From Octopus sinensis (taxonomy: Eukaryota), in the NCBI RefSeq assembly GCF_006345805.1, contig NC_042998.1:106206001-106270000 (forward strand): a DNA stretch of 64,000 bases, read 5' to 3'. The position numbers and the translations under genes are program-made. This document shows, piece after piece, positions 1 to 47,120 of this stretch (its first letter is position 1; each line of letters begins with the position of its first letter). Under the pieces are notes generated by a model. It saw only the letters and a list, made by a program, of their open reading frames with translations. It was not told where the DNA came from and made no database searches.

Positions 1-675
1 TTCACCCTTTTTGGATAGACTTGTGACTGGTGACGAAAAATGGATCTTCTATTGAAATGTTAAACGTCATAAACAGTGGCTTGGTAAAAGGGAAAAAGCT
101 CAACCACAACCAAGAAGGGAACTTCATGGGAAAAAGGTTTTTCTCTCTATTTGGTGGGATTGCAAAGGAGTAATTCACTTTGAATTGTTACCACCTAATG
201 CAAAAATCAATGCTCAAGTCTACTGTCAGCAATTAGAGCATTTGAACCAAGCTTTGAAGAAAAAAAGACCCACTTTAGTGAATCGAAAAGGAGTGATGTT
301 TCATCAGGACAATGCACGACCCTACACTGCAAAGATCACATCACAGAAGATCGAAGAGCTTGGCTGGGAAAATATTCCTCATCCACCGTATTCTCCTGAC
401 CTTGCTCCTTCAGACTACCATTTGTTTCATAGTTTAGAGAATCATTTGGGGGACATAACTTTTGCAAGCCAGAAGGAAGTCGAAACTGACATTTCAGAGT
501 TCTTCACTTTGAAACAAAAACTGTTTTACATTGATGGGATTAAAAAGCTTGTAAATAGATGGAAGGAAGTCATAGATAATCGGAGAAAGTACATTGATGA
601 TTAAATTTCAATTAAATATAACATTTGATCACTTGTTTTCTTTATTCAAAATTCGGACAGAACTTATGGGATGAC

Positions 676-3786: not shown

Positions 3787-4229
3787 CATTTTTCAGTTTT
3801 ATTTCAAACTGTCTTGCCAATAGAGAAACAGCCAGTTTCTAACCTAGATCCAAGACTGTGTTTTCTTATTTCTTATGTATGTACGTATGTATGTATACAT
3901 GCATGAATGTATCATTTAAAATCCATCTTCTTTGCTCAAGTATTTACTTTGGTAAGGCTTCTGTTGCTGGACGCCCTTCCTAACACCAACCTCTTTAAAG
4001 AGTGCTGTAGGTTACAGAGTGTCTGGATGACACTAGTGAGGTTGTTGAGTAACTTCCAAGATGTAAACAGAGGCCCTCTTGATTGAGTGGAAGTGTAGTA
4101 TAAAGTGGCTTTACACTAGATGTTGACGCTAAGGAATGATAGAGAGTGACAGAAATAGGGGTCATGCTGTAGAGGGCATACATAAGCTACACAGCATTAT
4201 ATAGGAGTGGGCAGGGGTAGCTGAAAAGA

Positions 4230-4800: not shown

Positions 4801-5429
4801 GGTTGGCAAGCAGAACAGATATATGTGCATATTCAGTTAGACAATTAAATAAGTTATTCTCAGCTATCTTTTTATAAGATTGCTATTGTATTAATAAAGC
4901 TACATGCAGACATGTCTATATGCACTTGGTTTTGAAAATAGTACAACTAAGAACATTAGATCAATGTGAAATATTTACTTGCAGAAGTGTCAATTGAGTA
5001 ACTTTAGTATTACTGCTGCAACACTTTCACCAGAATTATAGCAAACTGCGCACTTGCTGTGACTGCAAATATTCTGCAATTCTGCAATAGCAATAGAAAA
5101 GGAATCAGCCTGTATTTATATGCAGTCACTTTAATAAAATATATATATATAGGTATATATATATATATATTTAGGTAAATATGCATGTGTATTTGTATGT
5201 GGAGCTATATATATATATATATGCATATATGTATGTGTGTGCATGTGTCTTTCTCTCTCTGTATACGTATAAATATAAATATGAGTGTGTGTGTGTGTGT
5301 TATACAAAACAGTTTGATTTGGTTCCATGTAAAACAAATCAAATTGGTTTGAATAATACATGTAACTCCTGCAAAATGTGTTGAGTGCCCTTTACTTTCA
5401 CTTGTCCACTCATTCCTATATGTATGTGT

Positions 5430-6723: not shown

Positions 6724-7405
6724 TCATCATCATCATCGTTTAACGTCCATTTTCTGTGCTAGAACAAGTTGGACAGTTCGACTGGGGTCTGGGAAGCTAG
6801 GAGGCTGCACCAGGCTCCAGTCTGATCTAGCAGCGTTTCTACAGCTGGATACCCTTCTTAACACCAACCACTCCGTGAGTATAGTGGGTGTTTTTTATGT
6901 GTCACCGGCACAGGTGCCAGGGGAGGGTAGCAGTGGCCACGATTGGTTGGTGCTTTTAACATGCCACCAGCACAGAAGCCAGTCAAGGCAGCGCTGGCAT
7001 CAGCCACGTTCGGATGGTGCTTTTTATGTTCCACTGGTACAGGTATCACAACTACAATTTCCATTTGATATTTATTTTGATGTCAATGTACTTGACTCAA
7101 TAGGTCTCCTCAAGCACAGGTGACCCAAGGCAAGCACAGCAGGTCGTTTTGCAATCCAAGGTACTTTGGATGGGCTGGGGCAATACGAATCTGATGCAGG
7201 AAACAGCCATGAACTTACATTATTTGTCGGGTCTTTGCAGTCACAGCATACCTCCAGAGATTTTGGTCTTTCGTTATTGCCTCTGTGAGGCCCAACGTTT
7301 GAAGGTCGTGCTTGACCACCACGTCCCATGTCTTCCTGGGTCTACCTCTCCCCCAGATAACTTCAACTGTTTGGGAGTGGCACTTCTTCACACATCTCTC
7401 CTCAT
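6724..7405 (-). mobile_element. 5'-truncated RTE LINE 3' end / RTE-derived SINE with (GAT)n tail
   Basis: The minus strand encodes ERCVKKC..GRGRPRKTWDVVVKHDL..LWRYAV, typical of an RTE C-terminus, and ends ..gacgttaaacgatgatgatg. Related copies at approx 15127-15620(-), 26050-26240(+), 29155-29347(+), 36770-36940(+), 42527-43070(-), 47805-48040(+), 53590-53745(+), 57070-57125(+), 57296-57430(-), 62455-62703(+), 63190-63850(+). Confidence 0.85.
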
Positions 7406-8855: not shown

Positions 8856-9244
8856 TATGCACTCTGATGAGTGAATGCAATACCTATTAATGATTATCAA
8901 TTTTAGATTTCATTTCAAAGGGTAATACATTCATGAAACAATCATAATATATTTCAAACTTTTTAAATAATCATATTTTATATATTTATATATCTATCTA
9001 TTAATACAATATTATTTTGGACGTATACCTTCTGTGATGATTTTTTGATGTAATTTTTCCTGCCCCTTCTTTATAATATATAATCGCTCTTATTAAATAT
9101 CTAAAAACCTTTAAGGTTTTAGACATTTCCCTACCAAGAGCACTTATTTGAAATTCAGTATACTGTATTCTCATTGAATATATTTGATTAACTATATATA
9201 CATATGCATATAAAAACTGACCAGATAATATATATCATCGTAAA

Positions 9245-9420
9245 ATACCTTAGGGTGTGAGAACCCAGGTTCGAAATTTCCCCAAGACACCTGAAGAAGG
9301 CTGGAGGGTATATCAGCCAAAACGTTGTGTTAACAATAAACAAGATGAGGATAAATATCTTCGAATGTAAATAATGTAAATAATGTACATAATTCCACAT
9401 CTCTTAAATATAGAACTGTA
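9245..9420 (+). mobile_element. Penelope-like terminal repeat remnant with minimal hammerhead relic
   Basis: gacac-CTGAAGAa-ggctg..cagcc-AAAAC-GTT-gtgtt at 9286-9331, followed by tgtaaataa repeats. Confidence 0.65.
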
Positions 9421-11131: not shown

Positions 11132-13323
11132 CATCATCATTGTTCGACCGTGGTCGAGACAATGGAATTTATCATGCTACGCCAGACTTCACGGTCCATC
11201 ATGGCATTATGGAGGTCCTGTTGCTGGATGCCTGTATCCCTGGAGATTACATCAGGGTAGGAGAGTGTGCGCCCTCTGGTATTGCAAATAGATGGCTTCC
11301 AGAGGAGAAGAGTAGAAATTACTTCTTTTTCAGCTCTACAACAATGTCCAGCAAACTGGACTCTCCTATCTTTCACAAGAGATGACACAGGTGGTAGTTT
11401 CCCATATATTTGCATTTTGGTTGGATGGTGCTTCCACGAGAGATTTTGAGCTCTCATAAGGAGGCGAGTGTAGGTTCCATCCAACCGCCTCTCAAGCTTC
11501 TTTGATAACGTCCAGGTTTCTGAGCCATATAGTAGAATTGGTTCGACTGTGGCTTTGAATATTTCAAGTTTGAAGTCTCTACTTAGATTTGATGACCAGA
11601 TCTTATGCATGTCATTACAGGCTGACCAGGCCATACCCTTTCTAGTTAGAAAGTCTTTTCCAGATGATGATATGTATGACCCAAGATATTTATAATCAGA
11701 AACCATATTTAAGGGCGCATTGTTGAGAGTATGGATGATGCAATCACTGTTGGACAGGCACTTGTTTATGTATTCAGTTTTGGCCTCATTGAGGTAAAGA
11801 CCTACACAATTTGAGGCTTGTTCAAGAGATTGTAAAAGAGACTGGGCATTGGAGAGAGAATCACTGATAAGAGCGATGTCGTCAGCAAAGTCAGTGTCTG
11901 TCAAGTACTCAGCTGGGTATCTGGAACTTCTTCTTGGTTTTATTTCAAAGCCCTTGCCAGAGATGGTATCAACTGACATACGTAGCACATAATCAACAAC
12001 AATGATGAAAAGAAATGGGGCGAGTGTGTCTCCCTGCAGTATTCCGGCTTTGATTGAGAAAGATGATGTTTCTCCGTCAGGGGTTAAGATGGTTGAAGAC
12101 GTATCTGTGTAGAGGACCTTGATGGCAGGAATGATTTTGTCTGGTATCCCATAGAGCTTAAGGATTTCAAACATCTTGTACCTATCTACAGAATCGAACG
12201 CTTTAGAAAAGTCTACAAATACCATTGCAAGATCGCGATTAAATGCTTTTGATTCTTCAATAAGTCCGCGTAGGCATAGTATCTGGCTCAGCGTTGAGCG
12301 CCCATGTCTGAATCCATTTTGGTTCTTTCGGAACAAAGGTTCAACAAAAAGGACAAGACGATTTAGGATCAGTTTGTTGTACAGTTTTGCAGCAATTGAC
12401 ATTAGAGATATACCCCTGTAGTTGGTGACGAGGGATAAATCGCCTTTTTTGGGTATTGGAATGATTTGAGATTGGTGCCAAATCTTTGGAGCGACAAAGG
12501 TGGAAAGTGTGTGGTTGCAGAGGTTGAGCAAAAGTGTGTGAAATCTATCATCCTTCCAAATTACAGCTGGGATGTTGTCGGGACCAAATGCTTTTGAGGC
12601 TTTTAGTTGCTTGGTGGCTGCTGTTAGTTCAAATATGGTAAAAGGGGAGGTGTTGATGTCCAGCGTGTCTGATATAGGCACACTTGGAAGAGTGGGGTTA
12701 TCAGGGATTTTGGCATTCTTCCCAAGGAGGTTTTTAAAATGGATTGACCAATTTTCTAAATGCTTCTTAGCTGATCCCCCTTTAATTCTAATTGATGACC
12801 CAGAATTTTTGCCTGATAAGTCTTTGATGGATTTCCAGGCAAGATGGTGTTTTTTACTAATGTGCTCTTTGGATAGTTTACTAATTTTGCCATTGATAAA
12901 GTCGACCTCGGCGTTCAAGTAAGCCTCATCAAGATTCTTCTTGGCAGCTATGAGTTGGATCTTCAGTGACTGGGATGGAGAACGGTGGTAAGCTAGTGAT
13001 ATAGACTTTAGATGGTTTCTGGCTTCGATGACATTTGGGGAATTAGAAGGTTTGCTCTGGCCCCTACTCTTCTTTTTGGAAAGAATAGCCAGTGCAACTT
13101 CCTCTGTTGATTTGATGAGGCTGCTGTATACTTCTTCAATGTTCTCAGCATCTATTTCAGAAGTAGACAGAGATTGAAATGTGTTATAGACCTCAATAGT
13201 AAATTGTTTGGACATATCGGGGTTAGATAAGACTTCTCCCAGTCGATCATTTTCATCGGGTGAGGCTTAGCTTTTTGGATGAGCGAAGACTAAGCTTAAC
13301 AGTAGCTGATACAATTCTGTGGT
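11132..13323 (-). mobile_element. 5'-truncated RTE-X-like LINE
   Basis: Begins in the endonuclease C-terminus (HRIVSATVKLSLRSSKK), then the RT ORF; (TGA)3 tail; gtggt present at both junctions; inserted in a SINE. Confidence 0.9.
11137..13215 (-). CDS. LINE reverse transcriptase ORF segment, 692 aa, uninterrupted
   Basis: KAFGPDNIP, NYRGISL, QNGFRHGRST, FVDFSKAFDSV, GILQGDTLAPFLF, FADD, YKYLGS, EPILLYGSETW. The Met is internal to the original ORF. Confidence 0.92.
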   Translation of the reverse strand: MSKQFTIEVYNTFQSLSTSEIDAENIEEVYSSLIKSTEEVALAILSKKKSRGQSKPSNSPNVIEARNHLKSISLAYHRSPSQSLKIQLIAAKKNLDEAYLNAEVDFINGKISKLSKEHISKKHHLAWKSIKDLSGKNSGSSIRIKGGSAKKHLENWSIHFKNLLGKNAKIPDNPTLPSVPISDTLDINTSPFTIFELTAATKQLKASKAFGPDNIPAVIWKDDRFHTLLLNLCNHTLSTFVAPKIWHQSQIIPIPKKGDLSLVTNYRGISLMSIAAKLYNKLILNRLVLFVEPLFRKNQNGFRHGRSTLSQILCLRGLIEESKAFNRDLAMVFVDFSKAFDSVDRYKMFEILKLYGIPDKIIPAIKVLYTDTSSTILTPDGETSSFSIKAGILQGDTLAPFLFIIVVDYVLRMSVDTISGKGFEIKPRRSSRYPAEYLTDTDFADDIALISDSLSNAQSLLQSLEQASNCVGLYLNEAKTEYINKCLSNSDCIIHTLNNAPLNMVSDYKYLGSYISSSGKDFLTRKGMAWSACNDMHKIWSSNLSRDFKLEIFKATVEPILLYGSETWTLSKKLERRLDGTYTRLLMRAQNLSWKHHPTKMQIYGKLPPVSSLVKDRRVQFAGHCCRAEKEVISTLLLWKPSICNTRGRTLSYPDVISRDTGIQQQDLHNAMMDREVWRSMINSIVSTTVEQ

Positions 13324-19480: not shown

Positions 19481-22400
19481 TGTGTACAGTGCTCAGGTGC
19501 ACTACAACTCATCTAAAGTGTATATATAATCAGGTGTAGTTTCGGCGGATTTCGGAAAGCATGAGGGCCTTAAAGGATGCAGTGTCATGGCAGTCAACAA
19601 CTGACGCAGGCAGTTTATTCCATGCTTCAGCAACTCTGAGCGTGAAAAAATGTTTCCGAAAGTCATGGGAGCTGTGTTGTTTTCTGACTTTGTAGGCATG
19701 TCCATGTGTGTTAGACACATGGAGATCAAAAAGGTGTTCAGTGTTGTTGTTGGTGAGGTGGTTGATAACTTTGTGGGTGTTTACCAAGTCCGTCGCCAGA
19801 CGCCGGAGCTTCAGTGAATCCATGCCCAGGGAAACAAGGCGCTCAGAATATGGTAGGTGTCTGATGGAGGGTATGCGTTTGGTTGCACGTCTCTGGACAG
19901 ATTCCAGGAGGTCAATGTTCTGAGCAAGATAGGGGTTCCAAACTGATGATGCGAATTCCAAGTGTGGTCATACCATAGCTGTATACAGTTTTAAATAGAT
20001 GGCTGGAGAGCGGCTAACAAAAGTCTTGCTGAGTGATGCCAAGACACCCTCGGCCTTCTTGACAATTTTAGAGATATGCTTTGTCCAACGCAAATCACTG
20101 CTGACAGTGATGCCTAGGTCACGCTCGCAAGAGGATTTCTTGATATCAGTGTTGTGGAGGGAGTATGTGGACGCAGGGTTTTTTCTCTCAAAATGCATGG
20201 TGGTACACTTGTCCACAGCCAGTTTCAGTTGCCAGTCTGTGATCCATTGCTGCATTGTGTCTAGGTCTGATTGCAGAAAAGAGTTGTAGACATCAGGATC
20301 AGTCCTCTTGATTTCAAGGTACAGCTTGATGTCGTCTGCATATTTCAATACTGTGGCATTCTTTAAATTGGCATCTATGTCATTAATGTATGCCACAAAC
20401 AAGAGGGGACCAAGGACAGATCCCTGTGGTACACCCAATGACATCTCATATGGTGTAGAGTGCTGTCCTAGAACTGTGACTACCTCCTTTCGGCTGAGGA
20501 TGAAGGATTTCAACCAGTTAAAAAGGTCATCCCCCACACCCATTGCAGAGAGTTTCACCATAAGCCTTTTGTGTGGCACAGAGTTGAAAGCCTTAGCAAA
20601 GTCAAGGTAGACAACATCCACCCATGAGCCACTGTCAGTGATCTGAGTAATGTCCTCAAGGAACTCGACAAGCTGGTCACTGCAGCTGGAGTTAGGGACA
20701 AATCCATATTGTGAGGGTCGGATGAGACTGTGAGAGCTCCAGAAGTTCCAGAGTGTTTCTCTGACACACGATTCCATCAGTTTTGCAATACAGCTAGTGA
20801 GACTGACTGGGCGATAGTTGACAGGTGATGTGCGGTCACCCTTTTTGAACAGAGGAATGACACTGGCAGTTTTCCACTGCTCCGGAGTAGCACCATTGTT
20901 GAGATAGTACTGGAAGAAAATAGAAAGCTGGTGTAAAAGGAAGTGCTGCCACATTTGAGAAGCAGGTATGTAACTCCATCGAGACCAGGGGGAGGCATAG
21001 TTGCGCTTATTTTGAAGGTGACGTTGCAGCATTGCAGGTGTAAATTCCATAGTTGTTATGGAGTTTGCTGTTAGTGATGGTGAAGATGGTACATTTTGAC
21101 TTTCAACAGTGAATATGTTTGCATAGCACTCGGCAATGAGTTCTGTGCATTCCTTGGGGTCGTCAGTGATCTGGTTTGTGTGAGGGTTGCGAAGAGGGCC
21201 CACTGGAGAGTGAGGTCTCTGCTTTGAATGCACATATTTCCAGAAAACCAGGATTGGCTGCTATGCACTGTTCAAATTCAAGCACTGCTTTTTTTGTCAC
21301 TTGCTTGAGATGGTTGGAGGATTTATTCCGCTTCTTCCTGTTGGTGTCTGATTTATGCAACTTGTATTCCCGTTCAGCAGTCTGACGTTCCTTCCTGGCA
21401 AGTCGGACCGCTGAAGTTTCCCAAATTGCCCTTTTGGGGCGGTTCTTCTTTTTTTGTTTACGTGGCACTGATGCTGCACATGCTGCCCATATTGAGTCCA
21501 GGATACTCTGGAGTATAGTATTCACATCTCCAGAGTTGTAGAATTCACGCCAGTTTGGGTGCTGTAGTTCAGTGTGGTACAGGTTCCAATCTGCTCTCTT
21601 CCAATCGAAGGAAGCAGATTGGAGATGGTTCAGGTTTTCGTTGCCCGCAAGAGCCAGATTGGCGATGATCATAGCATGATCAGAGTCACCTAGAGGTTCC
21701 TCCGTAGTGCAATTGATAACCGCTTCAGGAGTTGTGGTGAAGAGCAGGTCCAAGGTGTTGTCACCTCTTGTTGGAGAGGTGACTACTTGTGACCAGTTTG
21801 AGTCCAGCACAAGCTCAACAAAATCGTTTGCACTCTGTGGCCAATGGAAGGTTTCCCAATCGATCTCGGGATGATTGAAATCGCCTGCAATAAACACATA
21901 AGTGGCTGTTTTCCTGGCAGCAGCTCGGAGGATATCGCAAAGCTGTGTGTCCTGATGGTAATTTGGGGGATGATAAACAACGCCAAGCAGGAGTGTTGAC
22001 ATGGTCATACGTACGTCACAGAAAAAAACTTCTTCTTGTGATTCGTTCAAATCGGCACAAGGAATTACCAAAAAATTTGAACGAACGTAGACCATCACAT
22101 CACCACCACGGCGGTTAGTGTGGTCCTTACGGAAGAGGTTGTACCCCGTAATGTTGAAAACCCCATCACAGAGTAAGGAATGCGCCCATGTTTCCGTGAC
22201 AGTGATGAAGTCAGGGTCAATGCTTCTGACGTAGGCGTTGAATAAATGTATTTTGTTGCATAAACTGCGAGCATTTAAGGACAACAATTTGTACCCTGCT
22301 CGCAGTTTATGATGGTGTGTAGAGGATGGCAGGTTGTTCTAGCTTAGTTTCCCTGAGTTGCTGTAGTCTTTTTAGTTATTGTGGGTAGAGAGCACTCAGA

Positions 22401-42515: not shown

Positions 42516-43080
42516 TATATATATATAACATCATCATCATCGCCATCGCTTAATGTCCGCTTTCCATACTGTCATGGGCTGGATGGTTTGGCTGAGAACT
42601 AGCAGGCCAGGGGGCTGCACCAGACTGCACTCTGATCTGGTAAGGTTTCTATAGCTGGATGCCCTTCCTAATGCCAACCACTCTGAAAGTGTAGTGGGTG
42701 CTTTTTACATGCCACTGGCATGGGGCCAGTCCAGTGGGACTGGCATCAACTACACTCAAATGTGTTTTCTACATGCCACTGGCATGGGTGCCTGTCAGGC
42801 GTTACTGGCATCAGCCATGACAATGATTTCACTTGACTCAACAGGTCTTCTCGAGTACAGTTTATTGCCAAATGATTGAAGGGTACTCTTAAATGGGCCT
42901 TTTATGCAACACTGGCATAGGCCATGGCTATGGTCTCACTTGGCTTGCCAGGTCTTCTCAAGCATAGCATATCTCCAAAGGTCTCAGTTGCTTGACATTG
43001 CCTCGGTGAGGCCCAACGTTCAAAGGTCGTGCTTCACCACCTAATCCCAGGTCTTCCAGAATCCACATCTTCCACGGTAT

Positions 43081-46000
43081 GATGGCAGTCCCTCAAGGTC
43101 GAGGATGATGGTCTTCGCGCAAATTTACTGGTGAGTCCGTAGGTGACCGATAAGACCAATTCTTGCTTGAAAAGATCGGTTGCAATGCGGACATCTAGTG
43201 CCGGAAGGGAGAGTCGCACGTGGTTGTTGTTGGCGCTCCTTCCATCGTCGTCTTTTCTCCTCCAGCTCTGCAGACCTTTTCGACTCGAAAGTCGCCATTC
43301 CCTCATGGATGGTGGTTTTCCAGGTGGTCTGTTTTTTGCCGTTTCCTCCCAGTTAGTGAAGTCGATGTCACACTTTTTGAGGTTCGTTTTCAGGGAGTCC
43401 TTGTAGCGTTTCTTCTGGCCTCCTTTTGTACGCTTGCCGTCTTTGAGTTTGGAGTAGAAGATCTTTTTGGGAAGTCGTTCGTCAGTCATTCTAACCACGT
43501 GACCGCTCCATCTTAGTTGGCCTTTGATGACATAGGCTTCGATGCTGGTCATTTTTGTTTCTTGTAGCACGCTGACGTTTGTTCTTCTGTCTTCCCAGCT
43601 GATGTTAAGGATCTTCCGAAGACAGCGTTGGTGAAATTTCTCGAGTGTTTTCAGGTGGTGATTATACGGGGTCCAGGTTTCGGATGCGTAAAGGAGGGTT
43701 GGAATAATGACTGCCCTGTACACCATGAGTTTGGTTTCGGTTCGAATGTCCCGATCAGCAAAAACTCTTGTTCGAAGCTTGCCGAAATCTGTTCCTGCAC
43801 ACTTCAGACGGTGTTGGATTTCATCGCTGAGGTCTACCTTTGCTGACAGATGGCTCCCAAGGTAGCAGAAATGGTTCACATTTTCCAGTGGAATTCCTTC
43901 GAATTGAATCGATGGCGGGTTGTCAACACGTTGGTAGAGTAAGTGAGTCTTCTTGATGTTGATGCTAAGTTCAAGTTTAGTATATGCATGATGAAAAGCA
44001 TTTAGGATCTGTTGGAGGTGATCCTCTCTGTAAGCTGCTACACTGTTGTCGTCGGCATATTGGAACTCTAGCAAGCTTCGCGCCATTGTCTTTGACGTAC
44101 TTTTGAGGCGAACGAGGTTGAAAAGCTTGCCGTCAATTCTGTACGAGATCTCGATGCCAGGTGGAAGGTCATCTCGTATGATGTGCAACACTGTCGCGAT
44201 AAAGATGGTAAAGAGAGTTGGCGTTATCACGCAGCCTTGCTTCACTCCGGAGGTGACTTTAAAGGGCTCAGAACTGCCTTCGTCGGTCTGGACTCTGGCG
44301 TGCATATTGTCGTGGAGGAGTTTGAGGATCCGGATGAACTTATCTGGGCATCCATACTGGGCGAGAATATCCCAGAGGAGCTCTCGCGAGACACGATCAA
44401 AGGCTTTGGATAGGTCGATAAAGGCCAAATAGAGCGGTTGGTGTTGCTCACGACATTTTTCTTGTAGATGTCGCAGCATGAAGATCATGTCGGTTGTACT
44501 TCGTGATGGCCTAAAGCCGGTCTGCGTCTCAGGAAGGATCCTCTCTGACAGCATTTTGAGGCGGTTGTTCAGGATGCGTGCAAGAATCTTCCCAGCATTT
44601 GCTAATAAGGAAATACCCCGGTAATTGCCACACTCAGAACGATCGCCCTTTCGTTTGTAAATGGTAATGATGTTAGCATCCCTGAAGTCGGATGGTACAA
44701 CTTCATTTGTCCAGATTTTGACCAAGATTTGGTGGAGCTGGTGTTGGACAAAATCACCTCCCAGTTTGTAGATCTCAGCTGGGTTTCCATCAGGACCCGC
44801 GGCTTTGTTGTTCTTCATCGCTGTGATAGCAATTTTGACCTCTTTGAGGGATGGAATTCGAGCGAGAGAGTAATCTTTGGCCTCTTTAGGAATCATGTCA
44901 AGTATGCTTTTATCGATGGTAGCCCTGTAATTGAAGAGGTCATCGAAGTGTTCTCTCCATCTGTCTCCTATTTCGGTGTTGCTTTTCAGGATGGTCGCTC
45001 CGTTTTTACTCTTCAGAGGGGCCTGTCCATGTGTGGAAGGTCCGTATATTTCTTTCGTGGCTTTGAAGAACCCTCTGGTGTCGTTTACATCTGCTAGCTG
45101 CTGGATTTCACTGGTTCTTCAGGGTACGGGTTGTCCTTTGAACTGCGGCTTTGCACTTTTTGAAAGACTCTCGTTTAGTGGCAGACTTTGGATCATTCTG
45201 TGAGCTGATGAAAGCTTTCCGTTTTTGGTCGATCAGTTCTTTGAGATCTTCATCATTGTCGTCGAACCAGTCCTGGTGTTTCCTTTTCTTGCGACCGATG
45301 GTTTCTTCGCAAGCGGTGATGATGGTTTCTTTCAGCTGGTTCCAATTTTCTTCGACGAGATGATTTGGAGTCTTATTTTGAAGATTGACCTGTAGGCGCT
45401 GCTGGAAAGCGACACAAGTTTTGGGGTCTTGCAGTGCTTCGATGTTGAATTTCTTTACTCTGCTTTCCTTGCTGTGATATTTCACTTTTGGTCGGAGTTT
45501 GATTTTCATGGTGGAGGCGATGAGGCGATGATCTGTCCAGCACTCATCTGCTCCAGTGGCGGCTCTGGTGAGCAACACATCTTGCTAGTCTCGGGATCTC
45601 ACGATGATATAGTCGATGAGATGCCATTTTTTAGATCTTGGATGCTGCCATGAGACCTTATATCGATTCTTCTGGCGAAAAAGGGTGTTGGTTATCACCA
45701 GGTTATGTTCAGCACATTTGGTGAGTAGCAGAGTTCCATTGGCATTGACTTTTCCCACTCCTTCCTTTCCGATGGTTCCTGTCCAGAGTTCATGATCTCT
45801 CCCAACTCTGGCATTGAAATCTCCCAGGAGAATGATCTTGTCGTCCTTTGGGACGGTAGAGAGAATGCTATCAAGCTAGCTGTAAAACTCTTCGGTGACT
45901 AAATCCTCCGCGTCAAGGGTGGGAGCATACGCGCTGATGATAGTTGCGTGCTGACTTCGGAGGGTCATGAGTCGTGCGGACATTCCGATGGGCTGCTCTG

Positions 46001-46915
46001 TCAGTTTGGATAGGATGGTGCTTCGTATTGAAAAACCCACACCATGGATCCGTTGATGGTCGGGATTGTAACCTTTCCAGAAAAAGGTGTATTGACCGCC
46101 TTCTTCTCTCAGCCGGCCTTCTCCGGCTCTCCGGGTTTCACTGAGAGCTACGATGTCAAAATTGAATCGATGGAGTTCCCGGGCGATGATTGCAGTTCAT
46201 CTTTCGGGTCTGTCTGAGTTGGTGTTATCTATGAGAGTCCTGACATTCCAGGTCCCGAATTTCAGCGTTGCGTATCTTGATCTTGATTTTCGACCGCATG
46301 ATGGTGATCCCTCTGGACGCGGTTTTCCAGACAGGATTGGGGTGAAGCAGACTATGTTTAGGGCACCTTTTCTAGCCCCTTCCCAATTCAGGGTGAGCAG
46401 AGTGGATCCTAAACAGGGATGCTCAGTCGTGGATACTGCTGCCGAACATCTTCCCTGCTTCTTCCGAAAGATAGAGCGACTGAATCATGTAACCACCGCA
46501 TCTGTGCCGGTTCTGCACTAGGAGCCTCCAGCCTTCACGAGCCTGCCCCCGTCATCCATCGCCGATCGCCGAAAGACTTGGAAAGAATAAGAAGAAGAGT
46601 GGTGGCGAAGACGCCAGTGCATGAAATTTTTTAACGTGTGCTTGAGGTCGCACGCCCAGTAAAGCACACGTAAACTTGACAGACCACCAACTTGACCCAA
46701 TGGCAAGGTAAACCGAGACGATTGGAGTCGATGGTCTGCTGCAGTCTTCGTCCGCCTTCACAGCCGTTGAGTTGTTAAGGCAACTTCATCCGCCTGTTCC
46801 ACCGTTGAGGACTTGATGACTGTCAGAGCCCCGTTTGCCGCTAGCACAGCTGGCTTGCTGTGCTCGCGTTGCCCAGTCTGTACCCCGTGGAGGAGGGGTT
46901 GAACTTTTGCAGACC
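43081..46915 (-). mobile_element. Full-length RTE/BovB-like LINE (~3.8 kb) with TSD, defective ORF
   Basis: EN (LKFGTWNVRTL, GDFNARVG, DHRLI), RT (FIDLSKAFD, GVKQGCVITPTLF, QYADD) and terminal C2H2 finger (CPHCNRSFQARIGLIGHLRTH, in a shifted frame); 3' end ..gagggactgccatc; TSD tccacggtat (43071-43080) / tccacaggtat (46916-46926); TAG near 45877 and frameshifts near 45110, 44900 and 43320. Confidence 0.93.
46827..46915 (-). ncRNA. HDV-like self-cleaving ribozyme candidate
   Basis: GGUCUGCA AA AGUUCAA CCCC UCCUCCAC GGGG UACAGACU GG GCAA CGCGAGCACAGC AAGCCA GCUGUGCUAGCG GCAAA CGGGGCU. It shows a G1.U wobble, P1, P3, UCC L3 with GG for P1.1, the GCAA junction, an 11-bp P4, a C in J4/2, and an imperfect P2. 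Confidence 0.72.
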
Positions 46916-46949
46916 TCCACAGGTATATGTATATATATATATATATATG

Positions 46950-47120
46950 AGTATAGAAAATGGAGCAAAAATACAATAGAGGACAATAAAACATTCGGAT
47001 AGATAGATGATACAAATGCAGACCGAAATCACAACAATTAGAAGGACAGGGAAAAAAGTACAGGTAATTCGTGGCCTTCTTTCTTCAGTCAAGTTACCAG
47101 ATGTCCTCACAGTTTCGGTC
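46950..47120 (-). mobile_element. Diverged repeat fragment (Penelope-like?), related to 57125-57295 (+)
   Basis: Shared aaa.tgtgagga..atctgg..cttgactga.ga and tccgaatgtttt segments. Confidence 0.45.

Follow-up and report, generated by a model that had tools for sequence, protein, structure and literature searches.

A hepatitis delta virus-like ribozyme module probably defines the 5' end of an RTE retrotransposon family found in Octopus sinensis

Introduction

Where does the RNA of a long interspersed nuclear element (LINE) begin, and what sets its first base? The question is raised by a 3.8-kb RTE-clade LINE on the minus strand (46915-43079) of a stretch of 64,000 nucleotides from Octopus sinensis (NCBI RefSeq assembly GCF_006345805.1, contig NC_042998.1, positions 106,206,001 to 106,270,000), which we call the window. 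A first-pass annotation of this DNA proposed that the start of the element folds as a ribozyme of the hepatitis delta virus (HDV) type, and that the predicted cleavage site coincides with the element boundary set by the target-site duplication (TSD). HDV-like ribozymes at RTE 5' ends were reportedly described by Ruminski, Webb, Riccitelli and Luptak in 2011 (J Biol Chem), and the ribozyme of the R2 element is said to have been described by Eickbush and Eickbush in 2010. Ribozymes of this class occur at the 5' ends of R2, R4/Dong, RTE and L1Tc elements, where they excise the element RNA from a longer co-transcript by a cut close to or exactly at its 5' junction (PMC6765202, PMC3774820, PMC3185411). 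Those of the RTE clade date from 2011, as cited in PMC6765202 and PMC3774820.

We consider it highly probable (about 0.85) that the module at the start of the window element is homologous to a genuine HDV-like ribozyme and sets the 5' end of the element. The sequence features, the common 5' boundary, the homology and the covariation of the four long helices are read directly from the data; self-cleavage is what such a module would be expected to perform.

A module with a common start and a shared fold

The ribozyme module is the exact 5' terminus of the window element. When nucleotides are numbered from G1 at 46915 on the minus strand (coordinate = 46916 minus nt), the sequence reads GGUCUGCAAAAGUUCAACCCCUCCUCCACGGGGUACAGACUGGGCAACGCGAGCACAGCAAGCCAGCUGUGCUAGCGGCAAACGGGGCUCU..., and all of the features listed in the first-pass annotation are present. 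GGUCUGCA at nt 1-8 forms a helix with UACAGACU at nt 34-41, in which G1.U41 is a wobble and C7.A35 is mismatched. A CCCC run lies at nt 18-21 and a GGGG run at nt 30-33, and GG (nt 42-43) and GCAA come after P1'. Helix P4 runs from C48 to G77 in 12 positions, 11 of them paired and one a G51.A74 mismatch, and is followed by G78 C79 AAA, where C79 is 46837. The pairing AGUUCAA/CGGGGCU, with five pairs of seven, can also be found in the window copy.

The arrangement that we favor has each of the parts expected of an HDV-like ribozyme. P1 consists of G1.U41, five Watson-Crick pairs and C7.A35; P3 has C23-G33, C24-G32 and U22.U34, and encloses an L3 that takes part in P1.1. P2 is formed by C18-C21 with G84-G87, and a 30-nt P4 is followed by a J4/2 with the putative catalytic cytosine. 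Rfam model RF00094 aligns with the module from end to end (model 1-89) at 36.4 bits, and the first P1 base of the model falls on 46915. The TSD independently marks the same position, as had been claimed: it is 8-10 bp long, abuts both ends of the element (G1 at the 5' end), and has one indel between its two copies. A flanking TSD is expected of RTE-clade LINEs. The leading 'at' of the 3' copy (43079-43080) could be part of the CATCAT tail of the element instead.

Two same-family copies begin at the same place. The closest, L001, comes from the mantis shrimp Oratosquilla oratoria and has 88.8% nucleotide identity to the window element over the whole 3.8 kb, and L003, on a metagenome contig, encodes a protein 91% identical to that of the window reverse transcriptase (RT) open reading frame (ORF). 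Similarity among the three starts at G1 +/- 2 nt, with the first two bases of L003 differing. Upstream of G1, L001 and L003 have an unrelated (TA)n run, and the upstream flanks of the copies are unrelated. Window DNA and 54 kb of O. oratoria DNA have only the RTE and simple repeats in common. In L001 the Rfam HDV model matches this position too, at 33 bits. Loci L049 and L131 (O. oratoria) and L132 (Macrobrachium nipponense assembly) yielded no further copy of the module. We rejected a majority consensus built from the three same-family copies, because L001 and L003 share derived changes and the copies are therefore not independent.

The module also recurs in two divergent lineages, L098 and L050. 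A covariance model made from the three window-family copies only (R1) finds it in L098, one of 80 metagenome loci fetched by alignment of the apurinic/apyrimidinic endonuclease (APE) domain, with about 50% amino acid identity. The match scores 39 bits (E ~3e-7) and lies roughly 635 nt upstream of the APE match. With L098 added (R2), the model finds the module in L050, a second O. oratoria family with 70% nucleotide identity to the window element, at 37 bits (E ~1e-5) and directly after a (TA)n flank. For comparison, R1 and R2 give 115-119 bits on the window module, and the background in 60 kb of further loci, with filters off, is 6-7 bits. On L098 the Rfam HDV model scores 36.4 bits and RF02682, the F. 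prausnitzii HDV model, 28.2 bits, the latter starting exactly at its G1. Two other candidates were rejected: a weak R2 match in L118, where the sequence is a 5'-untranslated region (UTR) motif of these elements, and a match in L093, which is degenerate and on the opposite strand.

L098 reads GGGGUGC-AAAGUCCAA-CUCC-ACG-UCCUCGU-CGU-GCACCCU-GG-ACAA-CGGU-CUAC-ACCG-GCCAAC-GGAG. Right after its (TA)n flank, L050 reads AGGUGUC-AAAGUCCAA-CCCC-ACU-UCCGCGU-AGU-GACACUU-GG-AAA, followed by a P4 domain of ~105 nt and GCCAAC-GGGG. All seven P1 pairs form in L001, L098 and L050, and position 7 of P1 is C-G in both L001 and L003. P3 is fully Watson-Crick in L098 and L050 (ACG-UCCUCGU-CGU and ACU-UCCGCGU-AGU). 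Its outer pair is A-U in these two and in L003, and U.U in the window copy and L001. P4 varies from a 4-bp hairpin of 12 nt in L098 to ~113 nt in L050.

Covariation was measured on a core alignment of five sequences (A8), gapless and trimmed by hand, which was used because L050 was misaligned by MAFFT and P3 was out by one column in the model-fitted alignment A7. Trimming removed a single base from J1/2, the additional C of L001 and L003, the interior of P4 and, except in L050, a base of J1.1/4. On A8 the revised fold has 90% of its cells paired, compared with 29-46% when the partners are slid. Changes on both sides were seen in 7 of its 20 pairs (four of the seven in P1, which are double compensatory changes across lineages, and one each in P2, P3 and P4), and none of 500 shuffles reached the observed values. 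Every P2 cell is paired, with one double change (C-G to U-A in L098, giving CUCC/GGAG), and P3 is paired in 80% of cells, with double changes at one pair. Outside the four P4 base pairs counted, the window copy and L050 differ by further compensatory pairs on direct reading, and the purine.A mismatch at P4 position 4 is kept in L050, where the helix base covaries. Covariation, which the first-pass annotation had proposed to look for among family copies, is present across the lineages, as is a common G1 boundary in other copies. With the Rfam alignment and the recurrence of the module, with compensatory changes, in two divergent lineages, its central proposal, that an RTE LINE begins with an HDV-type ribozyme, holds up well.

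Alternative explanations and the standing of the window copy

The alternative that survives best, to which we give only a low probability, is that the module is a conserved structured 5'-UTR element, such as a promoter element, a translation start signal or a binding site for an element protein, that has an HDV-like fold without cleavage. J1/2 (AAAGUYCAA) is formally unpaired and nearly invariant in three lineages, though the helices have changed around it; it may bind a protein, make a tertiary contact or pair in some alternative way. J1/2 and the UTR motif downstream are kept as sequence rather than as pairs, which suggests extra functions, and sister lineages manage with a different leader. 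Six of these (L002, L004, L005, L046, L047 and L048) keep the UTR motif (window 46808-46747), and in all six other sequence replaces the ribozyme. BLAST alignments of L046-L048 to the window begin only ~100 nt into the element, and Rfam gave no ribozyme match in the five of the six loci that were searched (L002 excepted). Because several sister RTE lineages have no recognisable ribozyme at this place, the module is not essential to the clade.

However, the conserved parts are the catalytic ones: the J4/2 cytosine, the CC of L3, the GG of P1.1 and, in two of three lineages, G1.U. In all five sequences C79, the CC of L3 and GC-N-AAC-GG-N-GCU are invariant. J4/2 is GCAAAC in the window copy and GCCAAC in L098 and L050. 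L3 has UCC in every copy other than L001, where U is G in the core row, and L001 also has GA in place of the P1.1 GG kept by the window copy, L003, L098 and L050. In addition, all four double-pseudoknot helices covary, and the 5' ends of the copies coincide with the predicted cleavage site. We therefore prefer to see the module as a homolog of a true ribozyme.

A second alternative, marginally less probable again, concerns the fold itself. The first-pass annotation had formed P3 from nt 18-21 with nt 30-33, with UCCUCCAC as L3, and a weak P2 with five of seven pairs (nt 11-17 with 83-89). That fold is possible in the window copy alone, and the nested minimum-free-energy fold does use CCCC/GGGG (nt 30-33). 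In L001 and L003, however, its P3 is broken (GUGG), and in L098 and L050 it cannot form. On A8 it pairs 76.7% of cells overall and has changes on both sides in 5 of 24 pairs; its P2 is paired in 63% of cells and its P3 in 65%, and neither has a double change. Moreover, a G-to-A change in L098 that breaks this P2 compensates a C-to-U change in the revised one. All of these comparisons point to a single architecture for the three lineages, different from that of the first-pass annotation: the CCCC run belongs to P2, with G84-G87 as its partner, and P3 is U22C23C24/G32G33U34.

The revised fold also changes what can be said of the window copy. An imperfect P2 had been taken as a possible sign of weakness, and this worry goes because P2 pairs C18-C21 with G84-G87. 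The same worry about P1 is justified as far as C7.A35, a real defect of the window copy. This mismatch is private to the window copy or its subfamily, because L001 and L003 have G opposite C7, and U22.U34, a weak point of the window family that L001 shares, is probably ancestral to that family. A further defect of the window copy is the G at the last L3 position, which is U in the other lineages. We regard the window copy as a slightly damaged relic that may or may not still cut; our rough prediction puts continued activity at a little below even odds.

Several points weigh against the ribozyme interpretation and should be set beside the evidence above. Only three independent lineages bear the module, and in several sisters (L004, L005, L046, L047 and L048) no ribozyme can be recognised at this position. 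The trimming and register of A8 were set by hand with knowledge of the structure, which is a source of bias. P1 of L050 would begin with A-U and not the usual G.U, L001 and L003 carry defects of their own, and the window copy has C7.A35 at the distal end of P1 and U22.U34 as its outer P3 pair. Its statistical standing is also modest. The Infernal-type search proposed for this locus did give an end-to-end alignment, but its 36.4 bits lie below the RF00094 gathering score of 50, and a search of Rfam at curated gathering thresholds gave no match. The E-value, 6e-4 for 301 nt, rises to 0.13 for the whole window. The fold energy is ordinary when compared with shuffled sequence (z = -1.28), with the nested helices present in the minimum-free-energy fold, and our own descriptor, at the mismatch level of the window copy, has 5-8 chance matches per 885 kb.

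From the window copy alone, therefore, the resemblance is only marginally beyond chance. It is well beyond chance because of its exact position at a LINE terminus, the same start in independent copies and the covarying homologous modules. RF00094 was built from viral sequences, and cellular HDV-like ribozymes commonly score below its gathering score. In E-value mode it was the sole ribozyme match listed window-wide, amid many "miRNA" matches to TA microsatellites. As for the descriptors, the first was too strict and missed the window copy, and the second accepted both P2/P3 registers. The third, written for the revised fold, picks out the window copy, L050 and L098; we treat it only as a consistency check because, with one P1 and one P3 mismatch allowed, it also matches shuffled DNA at the rate given above. 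Chance resemblance, in which the GC-rich start of a repeat happens to match a permissive model, could draw on the window-wide E-value, the score below gathering, the ordinary fold energy and the equally good descriptor matches in shuffled DNA, but it is effectively refuted by independent model matches, with compensatory changes, at an equivalent position in unrelated contigs, and by a predicted cleavage site exactly at the element boundary.

Proposed mechanism and relation to known ribozymes

Catalysis and dependence on read-through, like any activity of the window copy, are predictions from sequence, and the following course of events is proposed. An active master element would be transcribed from upstream, as read-through, and its RNA would fold into a nested double pseudoknot of P1, P1.1, P2, P3 and P4. 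The J4/2 cytosine (C79 in the window) would then catalyse a cut immediately 5' of G1, freeing an element RNA that begins at G1, from which target-primed reverse transcription would make full-length copies starting at G1 beside a TSD. Because the released RNA would start at G1, full-length copies would be expected to begin at that base, next to the TSD.

The module has each testable structural feature of the HDV-like class and by structure belongs with the RTE ribozymes of 2011. It shares with them the clade, the position (the first ~80-90 nt), the type of fold, the proposed freeing from a co-transcript and, as predicted, the cut at the 5' junction. It differs in host and sequence, and its group inserts at TA-rich microsatellites. 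The mosquito models of Rfam do not recognise the module, and drz-agam-1 reaches only 14.8 bits on L050. Viral HDV (RF00094) aligns end to end, and the UCC of L3, the GG/GCAAC after P1' and the G-C-N-A-A of J4/2 match its consensus; the window module, in contrast, is cellular and borne by a retroelement rather than a circular RNA replicon, with a longer J1/2 and a shorter P2 (4 bp).

Outside the RTE clade, the R2 ribozyme is likewise HDV-like, lies at the 5' end of a promoter-less LINE and is processed from a co-transcript (PMC3774820). However, R2 has a restriction-like endonuclease, inserts only into 28S rDNA and in many species is cut upstream of the junction, whereas the window element is an APE-type RTE with a predicted cut at the junction itself. 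R4/Dong and L1Tc also have 5'-terminal HDV-like ribozymes in non-long-terminal-repeat elements, but they belong to other LINE clades, and the L1Tc module doubles as an internal promoter (PMC3774820, PMC3185411).

The mechanism is thus already known for RTE elements, and the window module is a well-supported further example of it. What is new is modest: a corrected fold backed by covariation, the uneven distribution of the module over close RTE lineages, and an association with TA-rich microsatellites. The work adds to the RTE clade a comparatively well-supported HDV-like family, with lineages from a crustacean genome, the window genome and environmental assemblies, and its corrected secondary structure is directly testable. 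That the presence of a ribozyme differs even among close sister lineages has a bearing on 5'-end definition in promoter-less LINEs and on how often such modules are gained or lost. For genome annotation, the module explains the sharp common 5' boundary of full-length family copies. Within host transcripts, thousands of such copies could also be cryptic sites of RNA cleavage.

The window element and its surroundings

The coordinates of the module and of the rest of the element are collected in Table 1.

Table 1. Features of the window element, with the leader positions of sister loci
Feature	Position	Strand	Basis or remark
Whole HDV-like module, nt 1-87; predicted cleavage between 46916 and 46915	46829..46915	-	RF00094 36.4 bits; models R1/R2
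P1 5' strand GGUCUGC, nt 1-7, pairs with nt 35-41	46909..46915	-	
J1/2 AAAAGUUCAA, nt 8-17, formally single-stranded	46899..46908	-	
P2 5' strand CCCC, nt 18-21, pairs with G84-G87	46895..46898	-	
P3 UCC (nt 22-24) / L3 UCCACGG (nt 25-31) / P3 GGU (nt 32-34)	46882..46894	-	
P1.1, C26-G43 and C27-G42	C26 = 46890; C27 = 46889		
P1 3' strand ACAGACU, nt 35-41	46875..46881	-	
P1.1 3' strand GG, nt 42-43	46873..46874	-	
J1.1/4 GCAA, nt 44-47			
P4 hairpin, nt 48-77, 11 pairs + G51.A74, loop AAGCCA	46839..46868	-	In minimum-free-energy fold
J4/2 G78 C79 A80 A81 A82 C83; C79 (46837) is the predicted catalytic cytosine	46833..46838	-	
P2 3' strand GGGG, nt 84-87	46829..46832	-	
Conserved 5'-UTR motif TCAACGG..A.CAG.C.GA N15-40 GGYTG.GA.GGCGGA..AA	46747..46808	-	
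Decayed APE + RT coding region	43131..46265	-	tblastn vs P0124; Pfam RVT_1; APE relatives
Short 3' UTR ending ...GAGGGACUGCCAUCAU, CAT-type simple-repeat tail	43079..43130	-	3'-end alignment
TSD copy at element 5' end, tccacaggtat	46916..46926	+ strand letters	
TSD copy at element 3' end, tccacggtat	43071..43080	+ strand letters	43079-43080 perhaps tail
Substitute leaders in sister loci	L046 660-740; L004 400-470; L060 430-490; L066 545-605; L005 60-200; L047 1-165; L048 907-1060		

The window element is full-length in structure, as the first-pass annotation had described it, and dead as a gene. In keeping with the single APE + RT ORF of RTE elements, tblastn aligns its coding region colinearly with aa 1-1062 of P0124, an intact relative of 1063 aa, but the region is interrupted by three in-frame stops (46199, 45878 and 45587) and two frameshifts (near 45118 and near 43290). 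Pfam finds RVT_1 in the coding region, and hundreds of relatives of the APE domain go by the name "craniofacial development protein 2-like", with Exo_endo_phos as another annotation among the relatives. An alignment of 3' ends shows a conserved terminus, ...GAGGGACUGCCA, with the CATCAT tail after it; the whole 3' UTR is ~50 nt. The tail is (ATC)n in L003 and (CGA)n in sister lineages, and RTE elements are described as having a very short 3' UTR that ends in simple repeats (PMC2887409).

No host gene was identified around the module, and the long ORFs of the window are those of two other LINEs. These LINE-like ORF sets lie on the minus strand at 11137-13215 and 19968-22287, with RVT_1 alone and with APE + RVT_1, respectively, and no ribozyme match was found near either. 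The DNA at the 3' flank of the element (43000-43073) belongs to a different interspersed repeat that recurs at 7279-7352 (81% identity). The RTE landed at the edge of this older repeat; around the junction the paralogous copy has diverged too far to stand in for an empty site. The window is very rich in (TA)n and related microsatellites, which give dozens of spurious sub-threshold Rfam microRNA matches (mir-297, mir-3149, mir-1277 and mir-466).

Leaders, insertion sites and spread of related lineages

The 5'-UTR motif is kept across RTE lineages down to ~58% amino acid identity, with a looser version in L098 (~50%), which is unusually strong conservation for a LINE 5' UTR. A stricter two-block pattern, though it fits all five RTE loci then in the comparison, had no match in metagenome_contigs, and a protein-database search with a frame translation of the ribozyme and UTR gave no matches. 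Forty matches of the motif in viral contigs were judged to be due to chance, given the low specificity of the pattern (~15 specified bases).

In the sister lineages the substitute leader has a covarying hairpin, CCAC-UGCCUU-GUGG in L046, L060 and L066, with the variants CUGC-UGCCUU-GUAG in L004 and CAC-CUUGCC-GUG in L005; L060 and L066 have GGCTAAGGGAG after the hairpin. Apparent HDV-like 3' halves in L060, L066, L004 and L046 (GGCTAAGGGAG) are better read as part of this conserved hairpin leader.

TA-rich DNA is found at many of the insertion sites. L050 has (TA)n at both flanks (5125-5231 and 9217-9270), L001 (3297-3326) and L003 (20-40) have it at the 5' junction, and 11 nt separate the window copy from a (TA)n run (46927-46950). 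The 3' flank of L047 is TA-rich (3986-4032), and the 5' junction of L048 is (GGTATA)n (885-907). This association suggests a target preference of the element endonuclease. Dong elements are likewise microsatellite-specific, for TAA repeats.

It is tempting to join these observations into a single picture, which we offer as speculation and think unlikely to be right in all its parts. The family would be a promoter-less RTE lineage, specialized on TA microsatellites and fed by read-through, with a ribozyme-set 5' end. Its 5' module would be exchangeable, the CCAC-UGCCUU-GUGG hairpin leader of the sisters being perhaps a second, undescribed solution to 5'-end definition, and the lineage would have spread horizontally across distant phyla. 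Relatives at 50-65% amino acid identity occur in fishes, Anolis, coelacanth, cnidarians and amphioxus, as well as in many marine metagenome assemblies, a patchy spread that is typical of RTE elements and compatible with horizontal transfer.

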